Virus record (IMG/VR): IMGVR_UViG_3300048597_000634
Coordinates: 62,001 to 126,000 of that record
Direction: 5' to 3' (one strand)
DNA: 64,000 nt
In this document: one piece after another, positions 32,701-63,185 of the stretch
How the letters are laid out: the number at the start of each line of letters is the position of its first letter
Numbering within the stretch: the first letter of the stretch is position 1
Translations under genes and position numbers: made by a program
The notes under the pieces: generated by a model
Databases searched by the model: none
What the model saw: the letters and a program-made list of their open reading frames with translations, nothing else
What the model was told of the DNA's origin: nothing

Positions 32701-35700
32701 TGCAGTCTCAGTCGGTGGCTGCTGACGTTAGTGGATCATTTTACTTAATGCCTGCTATGGCATCTGAGTTTAATAACGCTAAGTCCTTAGGTCCCCTATT
32801 AGCCGCCGCCCAGCGTAACCCTAACCTGACTGACTCTAGGGCAGTAGCCCTATACCGAGCCACGTTGATGCGTAAGTCCAGGGCTACGTATAAGAACAAT
32901 ATTAGTGCAGGTGAGTCTGCGGCTATTTCTAGCCCTACATTACAGATTGCCATTGGGCGCCGCTCAGATGAAGTAAGACGTCTTGCTTGGCAAACCGGCG
33001 AGGGTCATATGTTAGACCTGTTGACCACTATGGCTGCCGCAGGTCGGATTAAAACAGAGGCCACTACCAACTTTATTAGTAATGCCGGCGCTACTATATA
33101 TGACTTTGTGGGTAATAACTTCAGAATCCAACCTACTAACATCGCTGGTAATCCTGTTAGGTTTAGTATCCAGACTAATGCTGAGTTCGCCCGGGCTATG
33201 TGGACTATGGCTAAGGGCAGCAATACTCAGACTGACATCAACACGATGTTATATGACTCTGAGCGGGTACAAGACGCTGGGCCCAATCCTGTTACAGGGT
33301 ACTTCGGCAATATCATGAGTTACGCCTTTGGTACCTTTTATGACCGTACCTTAGATGAGTATGGCCCGAGCTTCCACAATATATTGCCCGCCGCCGCCCT
33401 AGCATTTAGTGCAGTGGGCTTAAGCGCCATGTTGACCGGTACGGCGATAACTTCGGTTGTACAGGGTATTGGGGCGCTAGGTGCCTTACAGGTGTATGGA
33501 ACGCTGGCCGACTCTGCTCGTAACTTAGACCAAGCGAGACAGAACGTCACTCATGTTATACAAAGCACTTCCTATGGCATCGGGCGCGATAACAAATTAA
33601 TGAAGCAAGTTGGCTCAGTGATGTCTGAGATGGATATGACCGGGGGCGTAACCGAGGAAGCCATTACTGCCTTAAATAGTGTTTTTGGTAAACGCAACCA
33701 AGTTGGTAGTTTAGGTAAGTTCAGTAACTCCCTAGCGGGTAAGGCCAGCCAACTAGCCTCTATGTCTGCTAGTAATACTAACGATATAACGGAGGTACTG
33801 CGGCAGATTAAAGCGGACTTCAACGATAGCGTTGAGGGTCTTCAGAAAGGCTTCAACATGTCAAACGACGCTTTCAAAGAGATGTTAGAGGGCATATTTG
33901 ATGCGACTGATAGCACTTTAGTAGCCGGCATCAATAATATTCTTCGCAACATGCCTCTGGAAGAAACCCGCCGACAAGAGATAGAAATCCTATTGTTGCA
34001 GCATATGCAGAATAATATGGACCCCTTGCGTAATACGTCGGGGTTTAAGCTGACTGATGCCGCCCCTAGCGATAAGTCTCGTATTGTTTATAACTCTCTA
34101 TCTGACAAAAAAACCATGAGCGCTAGCTCTGCGTTTATCAATACAGTATTAGACCAAGAAGGGTACTCTGGACTATTTAAACGGTCTACGGGAGGGCTAT
34201 TCCGGGCATCTTTTGCCATGTTTGATATGAAAGCTGCTTATGAGTTTGCCAGCTTTGCGGCGGCTTCCTCTGACCCTATGGATGAATTAGAACGCCGTCG
34301 GTCCTCTTATGCTGCCGCTGCCAGTCTATTCCAAACATTCGGGATGATTATCCCAGGTCAGGTAGTATTAGGCACCTTAGCTAAGAACCCGACCTTAGCT
34401 GTAGCAGCTATGGTCGCTGCGGTAGGTATTGGTAGTGTTGCCTATGCCAACAAGGGTTTTCGTAAAAAGGTCAGTAACTTCTTCAAGCCGAAGTTTAAGT
34501 GGGCAGACCGTAACATAATTAAGCCTACTATTAGGTCTATTGCCAGTGCTTTAGACGCAGTGGGAAGTATTGGCGCTGTCCAAACTATGCTATCTCCAGT
34601 ACGGGTTATTACCTCAGGCTTAGATCCTATGTTTACGAATATGCGGCGTAGGGCGGCGCGCATACCTGGGGTTAACTTCATAGCTGACATGTTCATCCCT
34701 GAGACCAAAGAATCGTTCTACGACCGGTGGTCTGAGCAGACACCCACTATGACCGCCTATGGTCCCCGCATGGAGTTATACACCCGTGCAGAGATAGAAC
34801 AAGACCGTAAGAATAGGATTGAATCTCGGCGACGCCGGGGCGGTCAATTAAACGCTGGCATTAGTGTTGAGTTAATGTCTGGATTCCTACAAGGTAGACC
34901 TGATTCTACTGAATTAGGTCGTATGAGGTTAGAGCGTTTAACCAAGGGCGCTGGGCGGGTAGCCAGTGAGCACATAGGGTATAGCTATGTAAGCCCCCTA
35001 ATTCATTTAGCGGTTAAGCGGCGTCAACAAGAGATAGACTCCTATGGCAATGCTCTACTTGGCCCGTTGGTTCCTGAGACTAGGGGGTCGGCGGCGCCCA
35101 TATTGTCTTTGTCAACTAGTGTTATGCGTTATAGCTTGCACAGCACTGGCAGTTTAATTCAAGCGCCTATGGATGTGGCAGGTAAGGGGGCGGCCATAAC
35201 CATAAAGTCTTTTGCTTGGCTGAATGACGCCTTTACTAAGGTGAAAGACAGTAAGTTAGTATTTGGTCTTATTGGGGGTGCTAAGGCAGCTCCTAATAAC
35301 CAAATGTTTACCTGGGCTGCCGCCGGCGTGATCGGCTCATCTATCTTGGCAGACCGTTTAGGTTGGACTCAAAAAGAAGATAAGAAATGGCAAACTGCCG
35401 GGCTGGTAATTGGGGCAGGCGCTACAGCGGCGGTGGCCAGACCCTATGCCGGCGCCGCCTTTAATATGCTAGCTGACCAAGATAACTTTGCCGGTAAGAA
35501 TATTCGTAAGCTACGTCGTATAAACATGAATGCCATTACTGACCTGGCGGTTAAGGTCGGTATGGGCGGTCTTAAATGGACTAAGGGGTTATTTAGTCAC
35601 GCATCACAGTGGGCAAGGACTCAATCATGGTCTCGCATAGCGGCTAATACCGGGTATAGTGGCGCTGCTATTGTCGGGGCAACAATGTTATTAAGCCCGG

Positions 35701-38700
35701 CGGTGGATGACTTTCTGGGTTGGGGTGAAGACCCTAAGAAAGAGAATGACCGTAAATTATTAGACCGTCGTAGGATGACGGCTATTGGAGTTACTGCAGG
35801 GGTGTCACTATTAGCTAGATTAGGAGCCACTTGGAAGCCTAACCTTGCAGGCTCAGCAGTTAACAAAGTAGGGGGCTCTGTCACACGATTAGCCACTTTT
35901 GGGGTTAGTACCTTAGCAGTGTTTAAGCTTAGTAAGGTAGTGATGGCTAATCAAATCACTGGGTTTGGATTTAACACTGCTTTTAACGTCGGCTATGGTT
36001 TGCTTAACTTAGAAGACGACGCACAAGGTCGGGCTAAAGCACAGGCCTATGAAGCTACCACGAGCACCATTGCTTTTGGTTTGACTGTGGGTTATGCATA
36101 TAACGTCTATGGTAAGGAATTAATAAATAAAGCTAGGGGTATAGCCCCGACGCATGTAGGCTGGGCTGCTTTCCGCCATAACGTTAAGTCTGGGCTTAAG
36201 AATATATTCACACCAGTTACCTTTGGAGCACCTTATTGGGGTCAGATAAGGGGTCTATTAGGGGGTGGTTGGAATGCGGTCTATAACTCGAATAATTTGG
36301 CTGGGCGGGCGCTAAGACCTACAGGTAGGTATTTAGGAATGGCTAAGGACATGCTGCCTAAACTACCCCCCGGTTGGAATGAGCCTGTTAATAAGTTCTT
36401 TGGTCGTAAGATTAATTGGTTAATCAACGCCCAGAATGCGGCTAACCCAACTAAGGCACAATACGCAGCCTTCGATGCTGAGCAGATAGGATTACGGGAA
36501 CCTGCCCGAAAATTAGCCATTAAGAAGTGGGGTACTGTAGCTAGCCATGCGGCGAAATTAACCCCATTGATTATGGATACGGCTACCATAGCCGCCGCCC
36601 ACCACCGATACACTAAAGTAGACCCTAAAGATCACCTTGGTAACTACAAGGAAGCCTACCGCGCATATTACCAGTCGTCGGCTATGACTGCGGTCAGTAG
36701 CGTGCTTAGTGCCATTAGTGGTGGTGATAAGAAAGTAGGTCTGGTTAGCACTTTGTTAACTACCACTCAAGTTAGTGATATTGCCGGACGTATGGCAGAA
36801 GAGTGGGCTACTAAAGACTTGTATTCAGGGCGGTTATTAACTGAACAACGTGCCGGTCAAGATAGTTACTTTAGTCCTGAGTCAGCTGCTGGCGTAGGAG
36901 CTTTAACGCTTAGTGCTGCAGCCACTGCGTCTTACTACAAAGTAGGGGTCTTTAAGTCAGCTCGTTGGGATAAGACCGCCAACTTTATGGCAACTCATGC
37001 TGGTCAAGTAGCCCAAACAGCCATTACTGCCTATAACTGGCAAGATACCTGGCGTGCTGGTCGGCAAAGATATAGTGGTACTAATCCTAACTACATTGCC
37101 GCACAGCGCAGTAGTGATTTGGGCAAAGGGGCATTATACGCGGCGGCTATGTTGTCCTTGGCGTCTAAGAATCCAAGTTCTGGAGGTAAGAATCTGGCGT
37201 TAAGGACTGCTGGGGTGGTAACCTTTACTGCTGCTGCTATGGCAATGGATAACACTGAGTCTTATTTTGCTAAGCAACATACCTTAGCTGTCCGAGAAGC
37301 AGGCATTAGGGATGTATATGTTAAGAACTTAATCCAACGGGAAGCCGCCGAATCTACCCTTGGTTATGGTGCTGCTGGGGCGGCTATAGCTGGTCTAACC
37401 GTAGCCTCGTTATTGGCTTTTAAAGGCAAAGGTACTCCTTTCTGGAGTAAGGCGTCTTATGCACTACTAAGTGCCGCTACTGGTGGTTCAGCGGCTAGTT
37501 TCTTCGGACATCAGTGGCAATTAAATAAGGGTATCCAGAAGTATAAGGATGGTATTACTCCTGAGCAATATTTAGAACGGCAGCGGTGGATAGACAATGG
37601 TGCGTATACCCCAGATAGTTGGCGCAACACTGACCAGAACCGAATGCAATGGTTGTTATGGAATACTGATTCGGTTAATGCCCGTAATCAGGTTCGCCGT
37701 GGGCGAACGGGTGCGGCTATAGGATTAGGTAACTTGAGTAGTAGCTATGTGACTCCTGATATGATAGCCGCCGCCCAAGATCGGGAGTTAAGAGCACGTT
37801 ATGGCCAGCCTATTACCTTTACCAGTACCGTTCAGTTTGTCGGTGGGGCTACTATACTTGCTGCTAATACTTTCCGATATGAGAAGGGTTTAGGCGCGGT
37901 AGGGGTTACATTTAGGCAACATATTAAGCCTACAGCCACTTTGTTTGATACGGTAGCGGGCTCTGCTAAAGATATGAGTCTTTGGCAGAAAGGTAAGTCT
38001 ATTGGTGGGTCTACACTAAACGCAGGATTCCAAGCATTACCCCTAATGTCGTATTACTTTGCTGCTCAAGGTGCTAAGGAGCAAATCACTAAGCATTCTG
38101 GACGTTATAGTTCTGGACGTATGACTACCGCCCAATACTTACAGGCTACTGCTTTGAGTAGAAGGGCGTATATGGCTCGTAGTGAGGCGCTATATGACGC
38201 CTATTTGCCGGGTTCGTCTAGTATAATGCGGTCGATTATAAGCGGCGTGGCTTTTGGTGCAGCCAAGGGTGCCTTATCAGGCGTCTTAGACTCCAAAGCC
38301 ATTGATGATGAGCGTCGGTGGATTGAGCGTAATAAAGAGGGGCTAAACCTTAGTAGTCTGAACCTAGCTAAAGCCAACCGTGCGTCCAGAAAATATCTAA
38401 CTGGTGGTAGTGGTACTGATAAGGTAGTCGGATTGGCTACCGGTGTAACCACTTTAAGTATCAACCTGTCAGCTGGTTTCATCACTGGTGGTCCTGTTGG
38501 TATATTCACTGGACTAATCACTAGTATTGTGCCAGGGTTACAGAACCAAGCCATCGCTAAGGCGAATATATCTAGACATAGGGCGCGCAATGTATTGCTA
38601 GAGAAAGGTAATGAAGTAGGGCATGAAGGGATATTAGACGACCTGAGTGGTATTGGAGCTGATGGTTATGGAATGATGGCGCTTAACATGGGGATTAGCT

Positions 38701-41700
38701 CGGGGGCGAGTTATTTAGTTAAGCGTATTCGTGAATACCATAAAACAAAGAAAGCCAAAGAAGCTTTAGAGAGTAAGCGACCTGGTGCTTCTCCTGATGT
38801 AATTAATAATACGTCAGATGATGGTGATGTTGGGCGCGGTGGCGGGACGGATGACGCTGGTGGCGACGGAGTCCTTAGCCCCAGACCCGGCGGGGGTGGG
38901 GACGGTGGTAGTGTAGGTCCTGCACCTACTTTGAAAGATGCTGATGATAGAGCGTCTACTAGAGCAGTTTTAGACACCAGTAATACTTCTATGTCTACTG
39001 AAGAAGTGAAGGCGGTCATGTCTAGAGGTAATGTTTCTGTAGAGCAGTATGAAGGTAAGTCTAAGTCTCTACAAGAGTACCATTCCGAGAAGATAGAAAT
39101 TTACGATAAGAAGATAAATGCGTTAAATACTGAGAGATCAGCGTTGTCAGCAGAAATAGACGGCTTAATTACAGAAAGGCTAAGGTTAGATGACGCGTAT
39201 CAAAACTCGTCGGTTACCGGCGGTAAAGAGGTGTATGAAGCTATAGAAGCGTCACATAATGCCTCATTGAAGCAGTTAGACGATAAGTTAAAGCAAGTCG
39301 ACCAGAGAATAGTAGAGATTGACCGTACAATAAACGCCCATAGTAAAGGGAGGGTCGCGTCTCAAACTATCATTAGTGAGTTGGGTACTGCGTATACTAT
39401 CAGGCACCAGCAGTTTAATATGCCAGCGCCCGCACCCGACCTGGTAATAACTCCACAACCTTCTCCGACAGTTGTCGGCCCCCAGCCTACCCTAGAGCCG
39501 CCTGTAAGCCGTGGCGGAACTACAGTAGCTCAACCTGTTATGCGTGGGCGGAATGCTATTGTCACTGATCTTGGTGACGGTACTGTGAGAAAGACATTAG
39601 TGCCTGACGGACCTAACCCACAGATAGCTAACAATATTCAAGTTGAGGCTGCGATACAACGTAAAATGGCCATCTTTGGCGTATCTCCAGACGTAAGGTC
39701 AGTTAACGTAGATTCTTTTGTCATGCGTAAAGTTACAGGGCACGCAGTAAGTCCTCTAACTGGAGAGGCTCTAACAGCTTCTAGACTAATAGCGGCTAGA
39801 AAGTTAGCTTTATTACATAGTCTGGGTGTTGTACACGGTGATGTACACTCTGGCAACATACTTACATCACCAGACGGCACTAAAGCTACGGTTTTAGATT
39901 ACGGTTACTCTAGATTAGCCAGTGTAGAAGAAGCTTACTCTATGCTGAGCGACAATGTAACCGTAGATAGACTCAAGAATAATGAATTTACGTCTAGGCC
40001 TATGGCTGACGGGTCACTGGGACCTCGTACAGTTGGGTCTGACCTGTCTGGGCTAATCAATATGTCTGGGTCTGACTCTGAGGAAGTATTGAAAGTATAT
40101 AAAAGTGAAATGGACCGTCACCGGCGTATGCCTGATAGTGACAATGTCTTTAAACTAAATGAGTTGGGACTACCTCCTGAAATAGAAGCCCAGGTCAAAT
40201 GGACAAACTCATCCGAGATAACCCTGAATAATGGTAACTTGGCATCTAGGGGTGCTGACATTGTTGAACCTATCATTGCACAACCCCAACAATCTACTCA
40301 GGCTAGTAGACCTATTACTAGTGCCCAAGAGATAATTAATAGATCGGGCGGTGGGTCTTCTGTGCCTACTACACCTCAACCCTCAATAGAATCTCATGTA
40401 AAGCTTGGTAGCGGGTCTACATCCTCGGCACCCAACCCAGTTATCTCCCAACCAGAACTCTTGGATACTGATAATAAAGTGGTCGGCGCCCCTGTAGAGC
40501 CTGACCAGATTGTAGCTAAGGGCGGTGCTAATATGGTGAGTCCAATGCCATCACAAAATCTTGGTACCACTACTAACCCCTTACCTAACGTATCCAACTA
40601 CGATAACAATGTAGTATCTAATCCTTTAGACCAGACACCTAGTGGTTTAAACAAGCAGCAGCCTGGCGGTTACATAAACCTAGGCTCAGACTCTATCAGA
40701 CCTAATGACCCAGTCACTATCATAAGTCGGTCTGGGCGCGGTCTCGTAGGTAATGCCATAGACTCCGTTAAAGAAGCAGATTGGCAAACCCGCGGCACCT
40801 ACGCTAGCAACACTGTTAGCGCTGGTATGGCTACCTTTAACCTCTACCGAGGTGTCACTACCTTAGCTAAGAAAAACACCACAGGCTTTGAAAAGTCCTA
40901 CGGGTTTGAATACTTAAGTCAATCTGGCGCTGGCTACGCTACTACTTACCTCACCATTAAAGGCGGGCTTAAAGCGACTAAGGCGCTGCCTTACCTAAAC
41001 TATGCTAGTGATGCTATCTCATTAGCTTATGGGAGTCATCGTCTTAATACAGCTACTACTGAAGCTGAATATATTAAAGCTAAGGGGGATGTAGGCGGCG
41101 CCATTGGTGGGTTGGCCGGTAATGTTGCTGGGCAGGGTATTGGTTGGCTGGTTGGCGGTGCTATTGGTGCAGGTATTGGTGCTGTCATCGGCTTCTTTGG
41201 TGGTTTTGGTATAGGTGCCGGTGTGGGTGCCGCCGCAGGATTTAAGATAGGCTCGTCTATAGGGTCTATAGTCGGTTCTATCGCTGGCTCTATGTACGGG
41301 GAGCAAGTAGGTAGAGACTGGGTCACTAAGAATAAGTATGGTGCCGGCGATGCCGTAGAAGTGTTCGACCTTACTGGTAAATATAAGAAGACTCAGGAGG
41401 ATAAGGAGCAGCGTAGAGCAGCGTCCATGGCTAGACACGATGGCGGACCTAAAGTGTCTTATGTCAAACCGAAGGCTACTACTGGTACTAAAGCTACTGC
41501 GGTTAAGAGAGTAACCAAACCCATGAGACCTGGGTCTAATACGTCAAAGAATGGGGGAACTCGGTCTGGTGTTGATGGGCCAACGAATAATATAGTGTCG
41601 TTTAACCCGCTTAGTAACGTACCTGGGTTGGACTTGTTCTTTCCTAAACCAGCGGCGGCTAGTGATGTTATACCCACAAGCGCAAAGGTTTATACGGAAC

Positions 41701-44700
41701 CTACCCTTCCTAAAGATATCAAGAATGTAGACGTTGATGTAACATCACGGTCTTTAGAATCTAAGACCCAGGAAGAAAAGGAAGAGATAGAAAATAAGCA
41801 GTGGTATGAAGGGCTCTTTGAAGGGCTGGCAGCAATGGGTCGGAATATGACCAATACCATCAACAAGGCAGCTGAGTATGTAGGTGATTTAATTGGCGAC
41901 GCCTGGAATTTTGTGACGGGTGGGGGCGCTGACGCTACCTTTGCCGATGGTAAGTTTAGCGGAAGTATGGCTCCGTTGTTTAACCTCATTCATAAATATG
42001 AGTCGCCTGGCGCCGGCTTTGATGCGTTAAATCCTTCTACAACGGGTACTGCTGTGTATGGTAAACCTCTAACTGAGACTACTATCGGAGAGATTATGGA
42101 TAGGTCTCCACGAGGTGGCGGACGCGCCAGTGGTATGTTTCAGTTTATGCCTTGGATTAATGGCAAAGAAGGGACGCTATATAGCGCCATGAAAGCTGCA
42201 GGTTATACCAGAGACACAGTCTTTACTGCCGAAGTACAGACTAATATGGCCATTAAATTTTTGCCTAAGCACAGACCTGAATTATGGGCGTATTTAACAG
42301 GTAAGTCTGACAATATCAACGCAGCTATGGATGACTTTGCTCGTGAGTGGGCTGCATTCCCTAACTCTAGAGATACAGGTGCTTATTCAGGACAACGTTC
42401 TGCTGGATTTGAAGAAACCAAGCAGGCATTAATAGAAACTCGTAAGTTAGTTATGGCTTCTGGCTCTGCGGAGGCAGGGTTTCAAACTGGAGCTGCTAGA
42501 GTAGGGGGCGTAGTTAAGACTAACGTGAAGACTATTCGTGATGGGGGTGGCACTCCTTATCACATTGATATGATGTTTGACCGAAGCACGTCATGGGAAC
42601 AAAGGGTTCAGGTTTTTGACCAACTAGCCGCTGGTTATGCTGCAATGGGTCGTCGCATTGAGTTTAGTAATAGTGCTGTTTCTGGTCTTGTATACCGAAC
42701 TAATCTTACCCAGAAGCAGAAAATCGACATGTTAAAGCGTGTAGAGTCTGCTCATAGTAATAGAAAAGGTGGTAGCGGTCGTGCCGCCATGGACTTTTTT
42801 GTCCCGCAAGAAGGTCATGCTAGATGGACAGGCGGACCAGCCACTAGCGGCTCAGGGGCTAACGTTGAGTATTTATTACCGGTCATTGAAGGTGGTTATT
42901 ATACTGTGGGTGCCAAAGGTCGTTCAGGTCAACATATTCAAGCTTTTGATGCTAGTGGTAAGAAGATATATGAGTTCTTTCACGGTGGTGGTGGTCAGCA
43001 AGGACGATTTAATTTTTCTGGTGCTGGTAGCGGCGGCTCTATGCCACAAGCAACACAACAAAATAGACCGCCCCATCCTCTCACTAGAGGTGAAAAGAAA
43101 GTTACTAGTGGCACTACCGGAAAAGGTCAATCAGGCAGTGTTACCCACTTTAAATATGAAGAATACACAGGCAAACGGGTAAGCGTTGGTAACAACCAAA
43201 CTATGGCAGAGCCCGCTGCCATCGCATTTAAGAAAATGCAAGAAGCCGCCGCTAAAGAAGGCGTAACGTTACAAGCTCGTAGTGGCTTCAGGTCAGTTAA
43301 AGAACAAGGAGAGGTCTTTAAACGAGGCCTAGATAGAAGAGAAGGCAATGTTTACGAAAATACTTTATATATTGCCCCTGCCGGATATTCAGAGCATGCC
43401 ACGGGTTACGCCATCGATATTACGGGTACTCTCAGTGAAGGTCTAACTGCTGCTGTAGCTGATACCGCCGCCGGCAAATGGTTGGCAGCTAACTCTGCCA
43501 AGTTCGGCTATCAAATGTCTTTCCCTAAAGGAAATGCCGACGGCGTCACTTATGAGCCTTGGCACTTTAGGTTTATGGGTGATTACTACGAAGGTAGTGA
43601 ACCTGATACGTCTACTGACGGAGTTTATGTACCCAGTGAGGGTGGTAGTATAACTCGACAACGACCCCAACGACGAAAAGTAACTTCCTGGGCTGAGCGG
43701 GAACGTCGTGCACAAGAACGCATTAAGTCTGGTCAGGTTAGGCGTGAAGTTAATATCGGAACACCAGCTAAAAATAATGGTGTACGTCAAGGCGGTGCCA
43801 AGGTACAGACTAAAGCTGAAGAGCTGCCCAAGAATATTCAGACTAATGATGTACCTGCCATGTCTAATGACCGTCGTGGTGTTAGTGGCTCTAGCGGGGG
43901 CTCGGGCGGAGGTGGTGGCGCCGGGGGCGGTAGTTCTGTAATAAGTGGACCCGTTTACACTCAGGGAGATTTAGGGTCTCCGGGAGCATTCCACTTTGAC
44001 ATCAAACGAGTCGAAGGCGGGTTTTATGAACGTGATTACCTAGACAATTATGTCCAAGTAAATGGTAAGCCTATAGGCACAGGTATTACAGTTAAGGGTG
44101 GAGAGTACGGAGCCCCTAGGTCTTACGGTGGTCATGGTGGCTGGGACTATGCCTTTGGGGATAAGAATGCCGGGCTTAGTCTTGTTAATGGTGCCCGCTT
44201 AATCAGCGTTACACCCACTAAGACCTATGGTGATAAGCTAATATTCCAGCTTCCTACTGGAGAACAGTTCGCTATTATCCATGGACGAGCTACTGCCTTG
44301 GGTAAAGATTCCGCTGGAGCGGAAGGAGCATATGCTCAAACTGATGGCTCGGTCAGTTTGGCTAGTGGCGGTGGGGGCCGTGGCGGTTACAGATATATGC
44401 AGCCGCCTCGTAGAAAAGTCACTTCCTGGGCTGAGCGAGAACGTCGGGCTCAGGAACGTATTAGATCTGGTCAAGTTGTAAGGCAGTCTTACGTTACTAA
44501 CCCAAGTAGAACCCGTAATAACCAAGTGAGACCCGGCGGCAACATTACCCAAAGCGGCGGCGGTTTTGGTTGGTTAAAGCTACCTTCCTTCTTTAGACCG
44601 CAATCTACTAACCAAGACAAAGTTTCAGCGATATATGAACCTGATGCTAAACGTAATGCTCGCCAGAAAGACTTACTCAAGACTATTCCTTCTAACCAGA

Positions 44701-45116
44701 AAGACTTAGACGTAGATGAAATCCTTGACACTAAGGTTACCCAGGCTTCAGATGAGGCTATGTCTAATGCAGAGATTATCGGTAATGTAATCGCTGAGGC
44801 GGCGGCCAAAGCCTATAAACAAAAACAAGAAGCCACCCCAGAAAAAGCCGTTCATCATATTACTAACGTCCAACGTCCGGCGGAGACTGCCCTTAACGTT
44901 AACAGCTACTCGCGGGCCATCACCAGTAACATTACCCGTGCTACTAAAACACAAACTGTTTATCAACCGGACAACGACCAAAATGTTATCTTGGTCAGCT
45001 CTCAAGTAGACCACACTATGGTAAATGTCAATGTGGCTAACAGTGGAATTAAATCGCCGTGCGGGTGGCAGATGGCGGGTAAGAAACAAAGAGTACAGGG
45101 ACCTTGTGTTGCCTAA
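26772..45116 (+). CDS. Giant (6114 aa) tape-measure-like/ejected polyprotein with PLD-like, kinase-like, muramidase, M15 and M23-like domains
   Basis: 18.3-kb uninterrupted ORF with a long Ala/Gly-rich amphipathic/hydrophobic core. Kinase motifs HGDVHSGN..DYG; lysozyme-like YES..ASGMFQF..AREWAAFP; VanY/M15B SGFRS..SEHATGYAID..YEPWH. Confidence 0.75.
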   Translation: MAGTFGYTSVNNDHQLKFNVPDRFSASRTGQVRPESGSNPYVVYSETHTVFNLEQSLSRFKRGTVETDNFLVTAPPDSFLGWALGKTESQVLAKQGVTRVQQSEFSFGANKSKIHVPAETQGIGRLRSFLERVNLNGEPPLVSGAGVDPNVPKEIEQKLAHFKITTGDIDAAALGQYEGITDGNNSPVEAPTKVAVQTTAMYGNYQFHGTWGIVGGALSFKRDSSGITDLGRGAYTQGYMDTSIHIEDPRYLRMVDDWSKDKYATRGVFRSEDYSKEGQEKLEGVKLLRNVSIHEEAIRETAAYIEALSPRSATAERLSEGKQITNKDLENIRKEYAEDLEVIQSDMQAAGAMYYMSGPAMGYNETNLSDNTVAGIRRQQVKQTLDQIETLKQLGIKPVIHTDINRMDIDTGSKRRLLEEAYVVQTHTFFGMSQQQAHHNVSGLVIPNLDIDSQAGSRLKEAGLASESGLAGFISLGTARLIGSFAYEMGIQVDLDAAPDSYVDAIMGSIGRTLNVGAVYRQRKDAAYQGPSGADLSSFYKPTYRDVRSGNFQEIGLLPVMPNEMPDDFFEYYGGLSTRIYSDRYQALYGTKATGMQGHVLERLDAKLSAPGFGMGLNQLFRQDDLYTPGQGLAGFLATSIGRVFDTVSGHYTMQRIKKQHDGDLSGSLGEYQQKIIEQEHFRAIEQRGFFENLFNTLTTTIADTSLSMASYFGVTHAYSIAKAQIEDAGSKHILDVVTGAVGEGKAHTSILMLTGGHSKLFEEANQLHELMDKVGGFDSIKSASSLGDYLLAVQDFTSGQDVTIAEGATDSVFGWYKKKKDVEGFMRTPTGPGAAPVSALGEQQLFDFLDDIYNVKPGLDDDLASLVKKKLGQANTNSIDPAALRKAYAKALEEMGITINLPTSGNAHVSGSVELARSLDNANSGAIHMPDAVGFRNIRAVRRLDSANLTNMFLPFLDNAVDLSTEASKEGYLKAREQLVDLARAKPVLTFDSSVQGEHTNKILHYGYDRLTDLARTFDDLAQYLPAYPLLWIKPIRDAFNRYELAQGKTKDDILGTRRSFRDLIGPGFTGLLSLQGEVSRTIGSIAQVGVGKYVTNTLEVFKLQGQASVLEAKIANSFKESYKFIAQVHGAANNVNFDDVLQAFIDRLQDPKKSGINQQDFEELAKLHSEISLKINKTPGLKYSTGHNELGAPGEDSYAGLRKFLFSAGAVLIADRIIDHFFIKPQGVDLGDSLMSHIFGTVSPEVEGREEDAKVLAGYSQNYSHTAPAIFKYPAATAGYAIGGLVFPSVYHQASHLKYWTSATKGKQFTSDQVELVTQVASGITQGLQGITPNATKEQLAEAFAKGSANAFAGSNKLRFGYAGAFVGASLALLATQAITSVVASTLEPLVALGDTAFRGRWHDPRKGLELDPIKGSAAAIFAKAHRQGAARAAALSQRAEARGGKAGDYMDYTSRGSMVVAWLLSSSMTVSAQQPGRLFYPFATQIAAPFYQFAMVGKLDPSSNQITMQSGLQLFPLSGVGFMVPSMFNPATKYTPSIAEQFLINQLTDLTPGMNQRALIGDDSDVEQRKEAYSLLKASSGILSLALGSGLNPTFDYRPVMFIGGLTALQSAEQVLGKSVGRLKPDSALYKELKNYETVYSIASMGLNVTDKLTRGAFSLSLTGVNYLTHSITAFLGRGELSLFKAGPAARKLMPFYLSAMLVAGMLRPGQTTTEHQSDHIGSLIENLTEGNTFGAVRLEQDHLTNYVLATAIGSAGFGGALTASGAFENVADWANEAGTGYIGLKKQEMYKTYLEHLGKIGVSVDDAADFRKQLMVSIKRGENVTTLLSQVNRQQLPLLQSGAARLGMASRVLAPILLGSFVAAQFLSLTDFYDHSNPVSYLLRGLTDTGRGAQMTYEQKAMLSNLGIKGARYQPKNVGEAVSNVGDYLLRSVFFMGNPSKSMGTYQDAPSPFLGLGGPFGVSGQQDMMKSYMQSQSVAADVSGSFYLMPAMASEFNNAKSLGPLLAAAQRNPNLTDSRAVALYRATLMRKSRATYKNNISAGESAAISSPTLQIAIGRRSDEVRRLAWQTGEGHMLDLLTTMAAAGRIKTEATTNFISNAGATIYDFVGNNFRIQPTNIAGNPVRFSIQTNAEFARAMWTMAKGSNTQTDINTMLYDSERVQDAGPNPVTGYFGNIMSYAFGTFYDRTLDEYGPSFHNILPAAALAFSAVGLSAMLTGTAITSVVQGIGALGALQVYGTLADSARNLDQARQNVTHVIQSTSYGIGRDNKLMKQVGSVMSEMDMTGGVTEEAITALNSVFGKRNQVGSLGKFSNSLAGKASQLASMSASNTNDITEVLRQIKADFNDSVEGLQKGFNMSNDAFKEMLEGIFDATDSTLVAGINNILRNMPLEETRRQEIEILLLQHMQNNMDPLRNTSGFKLTDAAPSDKSRIVYNSLSDKKTMSASSAFINTVLDQEGYSGLFKRSTGGLFRASFAMFDMKAAYEFASFAAASSDPMDELERRRSSYAAAASLFQTFGMIIPGQVVLGTLAKNPTLAVAAMVAAVGIGSVAYANKGFRKKVSNFFKPKFKWADRNIIKPTIRSIASALDAVGSIGAVQTMLSPVRVITSGLDPMFTNMRRRAARIPGVNFIADMFIPETKESFYDRWSEQTPTMTAYGPRMELYTRAEIEQDRKNRIESRRRRGGQLNAGISVELMSGFLQGRPDSTELGRMRLERLTKGAGRVASEHIGYSYVSPLIHLAVKRRQQEIDSYGNALLGPLVPETRGSAAPILSLSTSVMRYSLHSTGSLIQAPMDVAGKGAAITIKSFAWLNDAFTKVKDSKLVFGLIGGAKAAPNNQMFTWAAAGVIGSSILADRLGWTQKEDKKWQTAGLVIGAGATAAVARPYAGAAFNMLADQDNFAGKNIRKLRRINMNAITDLAVKVGMGGLKWTKGLFSHASQWARTQSWSRIAANTGYSGAAIVGATMLLSPAVDDFLGWGEDPKKENDRKLLDRRRMTAIGVTAGVSLLARLGATWKPNLAGSAVNKVGGSVTRLATFGVSTLAVFKLSKVVMANQITGFGFNTAFNVGYGLLNLEDDAQGRAKAQAYEATTSTIAFGLTVGYAYNVYGKELINKARGIAPTHVGWAAFRHNVKSGLKNIFTPVTFGAPYWGQIRGLLGGGWNAVYNSNNLAGRALRPTGRYLGMAKDMLPKLPPGWNEPVNKFFGRKINWLINAQNAANPTKAQYAAFDAEQIGLREPARKLAIKKWGTVASHAAKLTPLIMDTATIAAAHHRYTKVDPKDHLGNYKEAYRAYYQSSAMTAVSSVLSAISGGDKKVGLVSTLLTTTQVSDIAGRMAEEWATKDLYSGRLLTEQRAGQDSYFSPESAAGVGALTLSAAATASYYKVGVFKSARWDKTANFMATHAGQVAQTAITAYNWQDTWRAGRQRYSGTNPNYIAAQRSSDLGKGALYAAAMLSLASKNPSSGGKNLALRTAGVVTFTAAAMAMDNTESYFAKQHTLAVREAGIRDVYVKNLIQREAAESTLGYGAAGAAIAGLTVASLLAFKGKGTPFWSKASYALLSAATGGSAASFFGHQWQLNKGIQKYKDGITPEQYLERQRWIDNGAYTPDSWRNTDQNRMQWLLWNTDSVNARNQVRRGRTGAAIGLGNLSSSYVTPDMIAAAQDRELRARYGQPITFTSTVQFVGGATILAANTFRYEKGLGAVGVTFRQHIKPTATLFDTVAGSAKDMSLWQKGKSIGGSTLNAGFQALPLMSYYFAAQGAKEQITKHSGRYSSGRMTTAQYLQATALSRRAYMARSEALYDAYLPGSSSIMRSIISGVAFGAAKGALSGVLDSKAIDDERRWIERNKEGLNLSSLNLAKANRASRKYLTGGSGTDKVVGLATGVTTLSINLSAGFITGGPVGIFTGLITSIVPGLQNQAIAKANISRHRARNVLLEKGNEVGHEGILDDLSGIGADGYGMMALNMGISSGASYLVKRIREYHKTKKAKEALESKRPGASPDVINNTSDDGDVGRGGGTDDAGGDGVLSPRPGGGGDGGSVGPAPTLKDADDRASTRAVLDTSNTSMSTEEVKAVMSRGNVSVEQYEGKSKSLQEYHSEKIEIYDKKINALNTERSALSAEIDGLITERLRLDDAYQNSSVTGGKEVYEAIEASHNASLKQLDDKLKQVDQRIVEIDRTINAHSKGRVASQTIISELGTAYTIRHQQFNMPAPAPDLVITPQPSPTVVGPQPTLEPPVSRGGTTVAQPVMRGRNAIVTDLGDGTVRKTLVPDGPNPQIANNIQVEAAIQRKMAIFGVSPDVRSVNVDSFVMRKVTGHAVSPLTGEALTASRLIAARKLALLHSLGVVHGDVHSGNILTSPDGTKATVLDYGYSRLASVEEAYSMLSDNVTVDRLKNNEFTSRPMADGSLGPRTVGSDLSGLINMSGSDSEEVLKVYKSEMDRHRRMPDSDNVFKLNELGLPPEIEAQVKWTNSSEITLNNGNLASRGADIVEPIIAQPQQSTQASRPITSAQEIINRSGGGSSVPTTPQPSIESHVKLGSGSTSSAPNPVISQPELLDTDNKVVGAPVEPDQIVAKGGANMVSPMPSQNLGTTTNPLPNVSNYDNNVVSNPLDQTPSGLNKQQPGGYINLGSDSIRPNDPVTIISRSGRGLVGNAIDSVKEADWQTRGTYASNTVSAGMATFNLYRGVTTLAKKNTTGFEKSYGFEYLSQSGAGYATTYLTIKGGLKATKALPYLNYASDAISLAYGSHRLNTATTEAEYIKAKGDVGGAIGGLAGNVAGQGIGWLVGGAIGAGIGAVIGFFGGFGIGAGVGAAAGFKIGSSIGSIVGSIAGSMYGEQVGRDWVTKNKYGAGDAVEVFDLTGKYKKTQEDKEQRRAASMARHDGGPKVSYVKPKATTGTKATAVKRVTKPMRPGSNTSKNGGTRSGVDGPTNNIVSFNPLSNVPGLDLFFPKPAAASDVIPTSAKVYTEPTLPKDIKNVDVDVTSRSLESKTQEEKEEIENKQWYEGLFEGLAAMGRNMTNTINKAAEYVGDLIGDAWNFVTGGGADATFADGKFSGSMAPLFNLIHKYESPGAGFDALNPSTTGTAVYGKPLTETTIGEIMDRSPRGGGRASGMFQFMPWINGKEGTLYSAMKAAGYTRDTVFTAEVQTNMAIKFLPKHRPELWAYLTGKSDNINAAMDDFAREWAAFPNSRDTGAYSGQRSAGFEETKQALIETRKLVMASGSAEAGFQTGAARVGGVVKTNVKTIRDGGGTPYHIDMMFDRSTSWEQRVQVFDQLAAGYAAMGRRIEFSNSAVSGLVYRTNLTQKQKIDMLKRVESAHSNRKGGSGRAAMDFFVPQEGHARWTGGPATSGSGANVEYLLPVIEGGYYTVGAKGRSGQHIQAFDASGKKIYEFFHGGGGQQGRFNFSGAGSGGSMPQATQQNRPPHPLTRGEKKVTSGTTGKGQSGSVTHFKYEEYTGKRVSVGNNQTMAEPAAIAFKKMQEAAAKEGVTLQARSGFRSVKEQGEVFKRGLDRREGNVYENTLYIAPAGYSEHATGYAIDITGTLSEGLTAAVADTAAGKWLAANSAKFGYQMSFPKGNADGVTYEPWHFRFMGDYYEGSEPDTSTDGVYVPSEGGSITRQRPQRRKVTSWAERERRAQERIKSGQVRREVNIGTPAKNNGVRQGGAKVQTKAEELPKNIQTNDVPAMSNDRRGVSGSSGGSGGGGGAGGGSSVISGPVYTQGDLGSPGAFHFDIKRVEGGFYERDYLDNYVQVNGKPIGTGITVKGGEYGAPRSYGGHGGWDYAFGDKNAGLSLVNGARLISVTPTKTYGDKLIFQLPTGEQFAIIHGRATALGKDSAGAEGAYAQTDGSVSLASGGGGRGGYRYMQPPRRKVTSWAERERRAQERIRSGQVVRQSYVTNPSRTRNNQVRPGGNITQSGGGFGWLKLPSFFRPQSTNQDKVSAIYEPDAKRNARQKDLLKTIPSNQKDLDVDEILDTKVTQASDEAMSNAEIIGNVIAEAAAKAYKQKQEATPEKAVHHITNVQRPAETALNVNSYSRAITSNITRATKTQTVYQPDNDQNVILVSSQVDHTMVNVNVANSGIKSPCGWQMAGKKQRVQGPCVA
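43671..44477 (+). repeat. Internal duplication RRKVTSWAERERRAQERI.SGQV (69 bp x2)
   Basis: Copies at 43671-43739 and 44409-44477, differing mostly at synonymous sites. Confidence 0.9.
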
Positions 45117-47048: not shown

Positions 47049-47076
47049 TCATCTTTTCAATATAGATGCAGTCTTT

Positions 47077-47131
47077 AACCTGCGACCGTCCGCTTAGAAG
47101 GCGGATGCTCTATCCACTGAGCTACGCACCC
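47077..47131 (-). pseudogene. 5' 55 nt of tRNA-Arg(UCU), truncated in the T-loop (likely attP identity block)
   Basis: GGGTGCG TA GCTC AGTGGATA GAGC A TCCGC CTTCTAA GCGGA CGGTC GCAGGTT: perfect D and anticodon arms. The expected CGAATCCTGC-CGCACCC 3' end does not follow. Confidence 0.9.
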
Positions 47132-60947: not shown

Positions 60948-61697
60948 TCAGCTTTTGATGTGCTTTTTACATAGCTCGAAGTAGTGTTCTCTTTCTGCTA
61001 AACCGTTAAGACCGCCGTTGATAATGCGGGTAATGATTTTAACGGTGGCGCCGCGGTCGGCGGTATTGTTCAGCTTATTTTGTTGCCAGAACCAACCGGC
61101 GGAGCAGAAGGGGTATTTAGCCGCGGTGTAAGAGGCGCCTTGTACGATTACTTGAGCATCGCCTATGTCGTTAGCGAAGCGTTGGTAATTATAGCGACCT
61201 GTCAGCATTAGACCGCCGCTGCCTTTGAACTTAGGTCCATCGCCAGGGCGATTATTACCAAGGTTTTGTCTACCCTCGTAGGCTTCTCCAGAGGCTAATT
61301 CAAGCCACCATTGACCGCCGCCGGTTTCATGAGCTACTTGAGACAGAAAATGCCAGGCGCGGGGTCCTGGCACGATGTCATACTTCTTAAGGCAGCGGTT
61401 AAGGTCTTCGAGTTGAGTAACGGTTAACTGTCTGCCGAAGATATTGGTTATCTGGTCATTGGTTACCCATAGTGTTTTTTCTTTAGCGTTGTTGTAGTGG
61501 TGTTCTAGGTTAGCCAGGGATTCATCGGCGTATTTATCGAGGTTAACCTCATGGGCTAGTCGTTTGAATTGAGCCCAGGCAGCGTGGGTTTTGGGACCTG
61601 GGTCACCGTCTATGGGACCTGGGTCGATGCCGATGGTTTTGAGCTTTTGTTGGATAGAGCGGATGAGGTTAGTGTCTGCGGCGGTTAGTGGTTGCAT
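60948..61697 (-). CDS. Endolysin: peptidoglycan-binding domain + GH19 catalytic domain
   Basis: PGPIDGDPGPKT..A..QF, FLSQVAHETGG, YEGR.NLGN...GDG.KFKG.G..LTGRYNY and TRIINGGLNGL.ER motifs. Confidence 0.92.
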   Translation of the reverse strand: MQPLTAADTNLIRSIQQKLKTIGIDPGPIDGDPGPKTHAAWAQFKRLAHEVNLDKYADESLANLEHHYNNAKEKTLWVTNDQITNIFGRQLTVTQLEDLNRCLKKYDIVPGPRAWHFLSQVAHETGGGQWWLELASGEAYEGRQNLGNNRPGDGPKFKGSGGLMLTGRYNYQRFANDIGDAQVIVQGASYTAAKYPFCSAGWFWQQNKLNNTADRGATVKIITRIINGGLNGLAEREHYFELCKKHIKS

Positions 61698-61699
61698 GA

Positions 61700-62374
61700 C
61701 TATGTGTTATAGCGAAGATGTGGGTTCTTTTCGTGTAGGCACTTGAAGATCCAAGAAGTCATCCAATTAGGCATGTGGGTGCGGACTAAGGTGTTGTATA
61801 GCTTTTTAACCGGCAGACCTTTTTGGATGATACCTAGAGCCAGCTTAACTTCATGGCCGCTACGAGAGAGACTAACTGCCGCCAAGGTTTGTTGGAGAAT
61901 GTTAGCGAGGAAGTGGATTGGATTGGTAATTGTTTCGCCTTGTTTGTTAAAGGGCGTGGGCTCTTCTGACTTAGGTCGTCCTATCAATGGAGTATTGGTG
62001 GCAGAGCTTACTATGATGTGGTCTTGTTTGCTGAGGTAAGTTAGGTTTTCTGGGCGATTATCATCAGTAACACCATTGATGTGATGTACTTCGACGACGC
62101 CTTCTTCAGCCTTGAAACCATTTGAGAGAGCTTTATACCCACCGCAGGCGTAGAAAGCGACTATTTGGGAGACGCCGACTATTTCACCGTTGTTCGTGGT
62201 GTGAAAATCAAAGAAACCTGAGCGGGTTAAGGTGCGAAAGACCGACTTATTATCTGCACGTTTAGCGAAGAGTCTGCCAGACTTTTTGCACTTGATGGTT
62301 TTAATGACATTGAGAATGGCGCCTAATCGGAGTTTAGCCCGTTCGGCGCCCATGCTAGCATTCTTATTACTCAT
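61700..62374 (-). CDS. HNH endonuclease with long C-terminal extension
   Basis: EVHHINGVTDDNRPENLTYLSKQDH motif. ATG 62374 preferred; the track GTG 62431 lies in the structured RNA. Confidence 0.85.
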   Translation of the reverse strand: MSNKNASMGAERAKLRLGAILNVIKTIKCKKSGRLFAKRADNKSVFRTLTRSGFFDFHTTNNGEIVGVSQIVAFYACGGYKALSNGFKAEEGVVEVHHINGVTDDNRPENLTYLSKQDHIIVSSATNTPLIGRPKSEEPTPFNKQGETITNPIHFLANILQQTLAAVSLSRSGHEVKLALGIIQKGLPVKKLYNTLVRTHMPNWMTSWIFKCLHEKNPHLRYNT

Positions 62375-62662
62375 AGGCTTAGGGATGAATGGTAGACACA
62401 CTGATCCTATCGAACACTCAGATAGAACCACGGTTTAAACATTCAGCCCCTACGGCTTTTTATGCACAGATCTTGGGGTGCGCCGGCCTATCATCCCTTG
62501 TCTCTAGGATCAGTTCCGATGCTATCTGTCCCGGCGAATTAAGCCCGTAGGCCTACCCTCTTCCGTATGCTGATTAATGGAAGGTCCCACGCCCGGACAC
62601 ATAGGGTTGTGGTATCGACATCCGGCCCATGTCCCCAAGAGGATGGTGTCCGGCTTGCCGAT
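62375..62662 (-). ncRNA. Putative large structured ncRNA / 5' leader upstream of HNH (family not recognised)
   Basis: GC-rich gap in an otherwise densely coding region, with at least 7 complementary segment pairs including crossing ones. An extended -10 lies immediately upstream. Confidence 0.65.
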
Positions 62663-62669
62663 AAAAATA

Positions 62670-62678
62670 ATCATATCA
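62670..62678 (-). promoter_or_regulatory. Extended -10 promoter (TGnTATGAT)
   Basis: TGATATGAT on the minus strand, 7 nt before the first hairpin ATCGGCAAGCCGG. Confidence 0.55.
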
Positions 62679-63185
62679 CAGCTTACCTAATCTTTCTAAA
62701 CAATCTCTACAAACGCCGCAATGGCGGCAGTCTACTTTGCTGGATAGTATTTGTAAGTCATTATTAGAGCCGAGGTCAACCGTTACAAGACTACCGGAGA
62801 AGCCACGTTCAATCTCTTTATAGCGGGACGCTATAGTTAGTCTTTTATTCTCTATTAAGGCTTTTTTCCTAGCTTCTTTCTGCTCTAGAGACTCTAAGCG
62901 TAGTCGAACGCCTTTCGTCGGTAAAGCTATGAGGTTGACAGTGGTTGGGAGAACATGTTTGAGATAGTTAAAAACCTGCGGTATTTCTTTAACACGGAAC
63001 ATATACGCAGATCTGGGGCTTTGTACGAAGCGATAGTTGTTTAAGCCGGGCTCTTTTGCTACCCACTGGCTCCGTTTGTTAATCCAGTCAACTCTAATAT
63101 AGCGGGTAGATACTATGTGTGGTCCTGGTTTGTGCACCTTCTCACGAGGTCGTCGCTCTCTCTTAGGTTTAGTTTTTCTCGCCAT
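62676..63185 (-). CDS. Highly basic protein with C-terminal CxxCxxCxxC cluster
   Basis: MARKTKPKRERRPREK N-terminus; CRHCGVCRDC near the C-terminus. Confidence 0.6.
   Translation of the reverse strand: MARKTKPKRERRPREKVHKPGPHIVSTRYIRVDWINKRSQWVAKEPGLNNYRFVQSPRSAYMFRVKEIPQVFNYLKHVLPTTVNLIALPTKGVRLRLESLEQKEARKKALIENKRLTIASRYKEIERGFSGSLVTVDLGSNNDLQILSSKVDCRHCGVCRDCLERLGKL

Follow-up and report, generated by a model that had tools for sequence, protein, structure and literature searches.

A predicted structured leader RNA precedes an I-HmuI-like homing endonuclease gene in a large cyanophage-like virus

We analyzed the locus of an HNH nuclease gene in a 64,000-nucleotide (nt) stretch of viral DNA, hereafter the window, which comprises bases 62001-126000 of the 205.5-kb IMG/VR record IMGVR_UViG_3300048597_000634; the record is classed as a provirus and is 91% complete. 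On the minus strand, a stretch free of open reading frames (ORFs) separates a gene for a 169-amino-acid (aa) protein from the nuclease gene, HNH1, which is followed directly by an endolysin gene (Table 1). A promoter-like site stands at the 5' edge of this stretch, and the remainder holds a predicted structured RNA, the leader, which ends where HNH1 begins. The virus is treated here as a large (~205-kb) cyanophage-like virus: its endolysin had its best matches in Synechococcus phages, protein relatives of HNH1 among 50,697 phage records were confined to Microcystis and Microcoleus phages, and short related contigs come from pond metagenomes.

The leader was compared with that of a close relative, IMGVR_UViG_3300048597_000133 (loci L002, L007, L008 and L031), with which the window agrees in local gene order. 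In all, the sample comprised ten HNH1-like loci (the window, L002, L003, L004 and L097-L102); L003, L004 and L097-L102 encode eight further HNH1-like proteins of 42-50% identity, for which the DNA was fetched. RNA positions are given as 62681 minus the window coordinate.

Table 1. Features of the HNH1 cassette, its neighbors and the paralogous cassette.
Feature	Window position	RNA position	Strand	Remarks
Gly-rich tail-fibre-like ORF			minus	first in local gene order
176-aa ORF			minus	between tail-fibre-like ORF and 169-aa ORF
169-aa late-region ORF	62676-63185		minus	directly upstream of ORF-free stretch
Promoter-like site	62670-62698		minus	TAGAAA-17-TATGAT plus upstream TG (extended -10, TGATATGAT); basis: sequence
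ORF-free stretch, ~300 nt	62375-62675		minus	
Predicted structured non-coding leader RNA of HNH gene, ~289 nt	62375-62663		minus	basis: ORF-free, indels, conservation, consensus fold
S1, first long hairpin	62613-62663	18-25/61-68	minus	closing stem UAUCGGCA/UGUCGAUA; A-U to G-C compensatory in relative (columns 30/66)
S1 apical module	62627-62646		minus	CCA-(UCCU CUUG GGGA)-CA-UGG; invariant 3' CA bulge, then UG(G); recurs in distant leaders
Hx 5' strand CCCUAUGUGU	62597-62606	75-84	minus	pairs with 62448-62456; closes central multi-helix domain
H2 domain	62530-62596	H2: 85-91/145-151	minus	stem CCGGGCG/CGCCGGG encloses H3 and H4; C-G to U.G or U-A, by register
Motif GGCGUGGGACC	62583-62593		minus	consensus GGYRYGSGRCC; 3' part of H2 5' strand and bases just after
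H3, CUUCC/GGAAG	62583-62579/62564-62560	98-102/117-121	minus	C-G to U-A in relative
H4, GGCC-UACG-GGCU	62553-62542	128-131/136-139	minus	UACG loop; G.U to A-U in relative
H5 hairpin	62484-62518	163-175/184-197	minus	invariant 8-nt loop AGAGACAA (62505-62498); stem UCCU/GGGA to UCUC/GGGA in relative
H6, variable hairpin GCAC...GUGC	62464-62481		minus	34-nt insertion in relative forms longer hairpin
Hx 3' strand GCCGUAGGG	62448-62456	225-233	minus	segment paired with CCTACGGGCTT in the preliminary description
H7, 3' hairpin GGUUCUAUC/GAUAGGAUC	62400-62430	252-260/272-280	minus	stem kept (U.G to U-A), loop rewritten in relative
UGUCU	62394-62398		minus	weak, post hoc candidate for loop-to-tail pseudoknot with H5 loop AGACA
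HNH1, 224-aa I-HmuI-like HNH homing endonuclease gene	61700-62374		minus	basis: Pfam, PHROGs, model
Endolysin gene	60948-61697		minus	PG_binding_1 and GH19-like part
117-aa ORF, then 402-aa ORF			minus	downstream of endolysin in local order; 402-aa ORF read as primase-like
Paralogous leader2+HNH2 cassette			minus in G000	L076 2538-3657 (= G000:199037-200156); relative L094 1476-2550

A preliminary description of this locus had read the stretch upstream of HNH1 as non-coding, and it is indeed ORF-free. The leader carries indels of 1, 5 and 34 nt relative to the close relative, none a multiple of three. A 50-aa ORF at 62522-62674, the only small ORF, was rejected because a 1-nt indel puts the relative in another frame; these indels and this frame switch together indicate that the leader is not coding. 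The leaders are 81% identical overall and 90-100% identical over alignment columns 31-90, in the 5' half, whereas five flanking genes in codon-aware alignments showed 50-79% amino-acid identity and only 24-51% identity at four-fold synonymous sites, which amounts to saturation. The HNH gene was as diverged as its neighbors at these sites (40% identical), and the conserved leader is therefore not a recent transfer or co-conversion tract. These comparisons indicate that the leader nucleotides are kept by selection on the leader itself, far stronger than the selection on the surrounding coding DNA.

The fold of the window leader taken singly was unremarkable (minimum free energy -103 kcal/mol, z -1.4), so the case for structure rests on comparison. 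The RNAalifold consensus energy of the window/relative alignment was -77.6 kcal/mol, below all 300 of 300 column shuffles that keep the conservation pattern (z -3.75). Compensatory changes fell in S1 and Hx, and also in H3 in the register read from the alignment, while H2, H4, H5 and H7 showed one-sided compatible changes. In Hx the changes were C-G to U-A and U.G to C-G (columns 80/277 and 89/269). This result points to a leader RNA that is structured and folds consistently in the two genomes. The best explanation of its predicted architecture is a first hairpin, S1, with a CA-bulged tip, followed by a central domain that is closed by the long-range helix Hx and holds four arms, and then by a 3' hairpin.

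All pairings in the preliminary description exist as complementary sequence, and about half of its helices hold. The pairings TGTCCGGGCG/CGCCGGGACA (H2) and CTTCC/GGAAG (H3) survive comparison with the relative, TTCTATC/GATAGGA (H7) keeps its stem with a changed loop, and GCAC/GTGC (H6) is the variable hairpin that the relative replaces with a longer one. The two long-range stems are broken in the relative: GCCGG/CCGGC meets CCGUG on the 3' side, and TCTTGGGG/CCCCAAGA (also given as UCUUGGGG/CCCCAAGA) meets CUACUAGG. The outer 3' pairing TGAATG/CATTCA shifts register. Both proposed pseudoknots are out-competed: CATCCTCTTG/CAAGGGATG (also CAUCCUCUUG/CAAGGGAUG) competes with the local S1 hairpin, which covaries and recurs in distant relatives, and CCTACGGGCTT/AAGCCGTAGG (also CCUACGGGCUU/AAGCCGUAGG) is invariant, with strands that sit in the covariation-supported H4 and Hx (62606-62597/62456-62448). 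The pseudoknotted model as proposed is thus not upheld by the comparison. A different candidate, AGACA/UGUCU between the H5 loop and the tail, has 5 bp in the window, 4 bp in L002 and 4 bp in L100, and appears as covarying AGAUA/UAUCU in L099. A 6-nt match is suggestive: the Hx 5' strand contains CCUAUG, as does the start-codon region, so that the Hx 3' strand could pair with either, over 6 bp only; an alternative UAGGGG/UCCCUA pairing is not kept in the relative.

The extended -10 element TGATATGAT is present at 62678-62670 on the minus strand, as originally described, and the predicted transcription start lies at ~62663. The relative carries a promoter-like site in the same aligned place (TGGAAA-17-TATTAT with TG), and most of the distant relatives have a TGnTAnAAT-type extended -10 site a few bases 5' of their first hairpin. 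Promoter-like matches were no more numerous than in shuffles; position is therefore the sole argument for a promoter. No terminator-like site was found on the minus strand within the leader or between leader and ORF, and any control would therefore act on translation or processing rather than through attenuation.

HNH1 is, on the evidence of its HNH motif and modelled fold, an I-HmuI-like homing endonuclease, matched over its nuclease domain only. HNH_3 (PF13392) was the sole Pfam match (E 6.9e-8; 32.4 bits against a cutoff of 24.8), PHROGs returned phrog_28475 (function not annotated) and HNH families, and H97, H98 and N110 were invariant in a 60-sequence alignment of relatives. An AlphaFold2 model built from these 60 relatives reached a mean predicted local distance difference test score (pLDDT) of 90.8. 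Aligned with VIA-align, model residues 11-128 superposed on residues 1-105 of I-HmuI (1u3e) with Z 6.0, a root-mean-square deviation of 3.1 and 22% identity over 86 residues. Foldseek alone gave a weak I-HmuI match (E 1.2), and matches to AlphaFold DB clusters were HNH or homing endonucleases, over the same part of the protein. The helical C-terminal ~95 residues matched no solved or predicted fold and, in this respect unlike I-HmuI, have no detectable similarity to its DNA-binding region. The preliminary description had called the protein atypical on account of a ~100-aa C-terminal extension; since the I-HmuI-type domain order is a nuclease followed by a C-terminal region, such an extension is not odd in itself. 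Its statement that the protein is not IscB agrees with our results, which show HNH_3 only, without RuvC, PLMP motif or bridge helix, and an I-HmuI-like fold; these absences exclude IshB as well. A profile search of 1.84 billion representatives retrieved 474 clusters at E<=1e-3, of which 147 reached E<=1e-10; almost all measured 200-250 aa.

A long non-coding leader is a regular feature of this protein family. All ten HNH1-like loci have 240-450 nt of ORF-free DNA upstream, as bounded by gene calls or contig ends (L102 only if a 77-aa call is discounted), and in all ten the downstream gene begins within 14 nt of the HNH stop codon or overlaps it. More distant members (L005, L010, Microcoleus phage My-WqHQDG and the paralog HNH2 of the same genome) have 460-690 nt of ORF-free DNA upstream. 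A CA-bulged hairpin, CA-(4-7 bp hairpin)-CA-UG, caps the first stem in four independent leaders of ~400 nt, always in a corresponding position but with unrelated stems (UCCU/GGGA, CUCUAA/UUAGAG, CCUUCA/UGAAGG and CCCC/GGGG). Besides the window, L097, L099 and L101 carry the module, each with a stem of its own that is fully complementary, and L100 has a near-match; the background of the descriptor was ~1 per 36 kb of strand (3.5 Mb scanned). The motif GGYRYGSGRCC follows the first hairpin in five independent leaders (window/L002, L003, L097, L101 and L102; background 1 per 65 kb), and the window lineage shares an AGAGAYAA-loop hairpin with L099 (CUACC-AGAGAUAA-GGUAG; background ~1 per 500 kb). 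Elsewhere, GGYRYGSGRCC occurs at window 27463 (+), inside an ORF of 6114 aa that spans 26772-45116 (+), and at G000:15834 (+), in similar contexts (TTAGGGCGTGGGGCCTACA-like).

The paralog cassette provides evidence of mobility. HNH2 (G000 199037-199696) is 28% identical to HNH1 and follows 460 nt of ORF-free DNA. The order in G000 is ORF156-(leader2+HNH2)-ORF204, whereas in the relative G001 it is (leader2+HNH2)-ORF156-ORF198, where ORF156 and ORF198 overlap by ATGA and so represent an empty site. Homology of the moved block runs from the promoter-like TAAGCTAAAAT...TATATT to ~10 codons before the HNH2 stop codon. Because the block lies on opposite sides of ORF156 in the two genomes, leader and nuclease form one mobile module; the linked RNA-nuclease unit envisaged in the preliminary description is borne out by this relocation of a whole paralogous block. 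Leader2 and its relative differ by 13 compensatory pairs, a count reached in 1 of 200 shuffles, and have a consensus energy z of -5.4. The phage carries two versions of the cassette, with different leader types and two HNH subfamilies, and no leader copy without an adjacent HNH gene was found in the genome or the fetched loci.

Two repeats were observed near HNH-family genes. In L010, a 16-mer like GGAGCGTAGCGACCTA occurs three times (1999, 2384 and 3072) around a distant HNH-family gene that appears to be frameshifted, with copies immediately on either side of the gene; the 16-mer may serve as a promoter specific to the phage or as a processing signal. In Microcystis phage Ma-LMM01 (NC_008562 ~35763-35942; L092 2081-2260), a ~36-nt repeat, GTTCCAATTAATCTTAAACCCTATTAGGGATTGAAA, occurs three times at ~70-nt spacing upstream of gp051. 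These copies, which the record calls a '56 bp repeat unit', are each a weak Rfam CRISPR-DR5 match (31 bits, below gathering) and form a CRISPR-like mini-array in a phage, after a TGTGCTATAAT promoter-like site and just 5' of an HNH-family gene.

Searches for known RNA families and for further copies were negative. Rfam 15, including HEARO, group I, group II, GIR1 and the small ribozymes, gave no match to the leader at the gathering threshold for the whole window, at E<=10 for queries of 1.4 kb and 321 nt, or in eight related loci; only noise was returned, and no family, group I included, matches the leader. ARAGORN found no tRNA, tmRNA or permuted tmRNA in the leader, and a look-alike of group II domain V (AAGCCGUAGG...GGUUC) was rejected by eye, as its upper helix does not form and the relative lacks it. 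The leader had no copies by blastn among the 50,697 phage records, exact-pattern scans of viral and metagenome contigs recovered the known relative only, and nhmmer and blastn against all fetched loci yielded no further copies. A scan with GTGCGACCNGCTTCC gave >120 chance matches and was uninformative. When distant loci were searched with a covariance model of the two close sequences, no match was significant apart from a local H5-like hairpin in L099. The leader, which is absent from Rfam, appears to be an uncatalogued structured RNA carried by a known kind of element, the free-standing homing-endonuclease cassette.

The best explanation, which we put forward tentatively and with slightly less than even confidence, is that the locus is a free-standing homing-endonuclease cassette, inserted between the 169-aa gene and the endolysin gene and equipped with a new structured leader that acts in cis. 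Its parts would be its own sigma-70-type extended -10 promoter, the ~290-nt multi-helix leader RNA, and the 224-aa I-HmuI-like nuclease with a stop codon abutting the next gene. The nuclease would recognize DNA by protein contacts, as I-HmuI does, and would nick or cut cassette-free genomes of related phages during co-infection, whereupon recombination would copy the whole module. The leader may act in cis on the nuclease mRNA, setting the amount or timing of translation, its stability or its processing. Such control would make a host-type promoter tolerable amid late genes and directly upstream of a lysis gene.

In its genomic setting, this proposed cassette resembles the seg and mob genes of T4, F-CphI of cyanophage S-PM2 and the I-HmuI family, each a small nuclease gene between conserved phage genes, in the same orientation and with its own promoter. 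As with free-standing phage homing genes, its position is polymorphic between related phages, shown here for the paralog cassette. Unlike seg, mob and F-CphI, it travels with a conserved, predicted structured leader of 290-650 nt; we know of no such leader described for those genes. The control known for seg, mob and F-CphI consists of short hairpins that occlude the ribosome-binding site and of autorepression.

Several observations weigh against this explanation. The leader is far more elaborate than the hairpins of T4, and its length together with its deeply conserved loops and bulges may point to a more specific biochemical function. The leader showed no conserved pairing that would sequester the start codon. 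The close comparison involves one relative, and its 4 compensatory pairs were not above shuffles, so that covariation alone proves nothing with two sequences. The motifs shared by distant leaders were defined post hoc, after the sequences had been seen, and L224 and L225, fetched later, have long promoter-led leaders without the CA bulge or GGYRYGSGRCC; the strict motifs therefore mark a sub-family and not the whole class. The primary sequence of distant leaders could not be aligned, and MAFFT alignments were not structure-consistent, which precluded a family-wide model or an R-scape-type test. Searches of sequencing runs listed no RNA run that carries the locus, and placement of reads gave only short DNA contigs of relatives with ~90% identity. 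Scans with the endolysin and the 169-aa protein for an empty site of the HNH1 cassette yielded only the one relative, which bears the cassette.

The alternative that fares next best, still unlikely, is that the leader is a ribozyme or self-processing element, derived from group I like GIR1 or a new self-cleaver, which would release the nuclease mRNA from late transcripts that read through the locus or define its 5' end. Its size of ~290 nt, multi-domain build and long-range helices suit this idea, as do loop and bulge nucleotides that are invariant across very divergent relatives. The succession of S1, Hx 5', H2 domain, AGAGAC, Hx 3', H7 and GUCU mimics P2-P3-P4/5/6-P7-P3'-P8-P7' of a group I intron, the AGAGAC loop resembles the group I R element, the possible AGACA/UGUCU pairing covaries in L099, and I-HmuI-type HNH genes typically reside in phage group I introns. 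The leader can be mapped onto a group I core by hand, with a weak P7. Against this, the putative P7 shrinks to 4 bp in the closest relative, both H3 and H4 lie within H2, an arrangement unlike P4-P6, and no P1 or splice sites could be drawn; no Rfam ribozyme or group I/II model matched the 321-nt query at E<=10 or six related loci at E<=1. A close likeness is offered by the lariat-capping ribozyme GIR1, situated before I-DirI-type ORFs, as a structured RNA of ~200-300 nt immediately 5' of a homing ORF and placed to shape the 5' end of the mRNA. GIR1 is eukaryotic, lies inside a group I intron (in twin-ribozyme introns) and has a defined group-I-like core, whereas the leader is intergenic in a phage, matches neither GIR1 nor group I in Rfam, and has no catalytic core that could be drawn. 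It is likewise doubtful that the leader family as a whole constitutes a new catalytic or protein-partner RNA class, obligatory in a widespread family of phage homing endonucleases (>140 clusters at E<=1e-10).

That the leader or a processed part of it serves the nuclease as an RNA partner (scaffold, activator or guide), as omegaRNA does for IscB, is improbable. Such a role would fit the strict linkage and joint movement of leader and HNH gene, the presence of two leader types with two HNH subfamilies in one genome, and a C-terminal region without a matching fold. The cassette also resembles HEARO/omegaRNA-IscB and HNH-only IshB in its layout, in which a structured RNA several hundred nt long immediately precedes a compact gene for an HNH-containing nuclease and moves with it. 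The cassette differs from them in giving no Rfam HEARO match, in its homing-type HNH fold, in lacking RuvC, PLMP and target-adjacent-motif (TAM)-interacting domains, and in having no guide-like segment that matches its flanks; the I-HmuI-like domain belongs to a family of protein-guided nickases without RuvC, PLMP or bridge helix. The preliminary description had considered RNA guidance with a variable guide segment. For four cassettes, each leader was compared with 400 nt of each flank on both strands, and the longest exact matches fell within the shuffled-flank distribution: none of at least 9 nt in two cassettes, and 11 and 12 nt in the remaining pair. Where window and relative differ, the changes fall in loops, compensated stems and one hairpin insertion, with no replaced single-stranded segment. 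The lack of both a flank match and a replaced segment is evidence against an IscB/TnpB-like, flank-derived guide; this bears on the flanks, and a target elsewhere is possible. No IS200/IS605-type ends were seen at the cassette, although no search was aimed at them.

An independent trans-acting phage non-coding RNA, regulating host or phage transcripts or acting as an anti-defence decoy, with the nuclease hitch-hiking on it or the reverse, is a comparably slim prospect. A promoter-like site directly 5' of the first hairpin and conservation of the RNA far above that of the HNH coding sequence are what such an RNA would show; the lack of a terminator-like site before the ORF, the absence of solitary leaders from the genome and the fetched loci and the way leader types track HNH subfamilies speak against it.

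Conservation at the DNA level, as a protein-binding or recombination site or as a co-conversion tract of the nuclease, is very improbable. Homing endonucleases do co-convert flanking DNA, and several helices show no change on either strand from one genome to the other. Saturation of the synonymous sites of the HNH gene argues against a recent tract, however, and the stems covary while loops change, with the same hairpin geometry built from unrelated stem sequences in distant relatives.

A mobile group I intron with a homing-endonuclease ORF is the least credible alternative and was rejected: despite the type of HNH, the length of non-coding sequence and the R-like AGAGAC motif, the upstream ORF ends at its own stop codon in both genomes, the endolysin has its own ATG and PG-binding domain, joining exons at the obvious sites would be out of frame, only 0-2 nt separate the HNH stop codon from the next gene, there is nothing non-coding 3' of the HNH ORF, the context was intergenic in 10/10 sampled loci, and no core or hit to Intron_gpI or a subtype emerged from covariance models at E<=10 (321 nt) or in related loci. 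Phage group I introns with HNH ORFs, in SPO1 (I-HmuI) and in cyanophage Pf-WMP3, whose IA2 intron carries the HNH gene of I-PfoP3I (PMC3428280), resemble the cassette in nuclease family, in occurring in phages and in how much structured RNA they contain. Their ORFs lie within or overlap ribozyme helices, and the introns themselves split a DNA polymerase gene, whereas here all of the RNA lies 5' of the ORF and the element is intergenic.

Further observations concern the surroundings of the cassette. The last ~40 codons of the 169-aa ORF (window 62676-62800 (-); L002 2540-2659), which hold a CxxCxxCxxC motif, are conserved far above the 50% overall identity of the protein, and this conserved 3' end overlaps the -35 region of the cassette promoter. 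A 275-nt pond-metagenome contig (run coded X2), ~90% identical to window 62562-62836, reaches from the 3' end of the 169-aa ORF across the promoter-like site into the leader, of which it covers the 5' third, and thereby attests a third related strain. A terminator-like GC-rich hairpin with a T-run lies at the same place within the endolysin coding sequence of both genomes (window 61350-61373 (-); L002 3999-4022). Farther away, Rfam reports a tRNA at 47063-47131 (-) with 38.8 bits, for which ARAGORN made no call.

Free-standing homing genes are usually seen as minimal, and here several hundred nt of conserved, predicted folded RNA are always carried along. At least two leader types are matched to two nuclease subfamilies, and the RNA is conserved at the nucleotide level more strongly than the protein-coding sequence. 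A regulatory leader would show how a selfish nuclease with a host-type promoter is tamed in a late operon beside a lysis gene. If the leader is instead catalytic or a protein partner, cyanophages of bloom-forming cyanobacteria would hold a new class of ribozyme or ribonucleoprotein. The RNA would then either process itself and so produce the nuclease mRNA, or be a subunit required for DNA cleavage or the choice of target; in the latter case, the enzyme would be a homing endonuclease that depends on RNA yet has no tie to the IscB/TnpB lineage.

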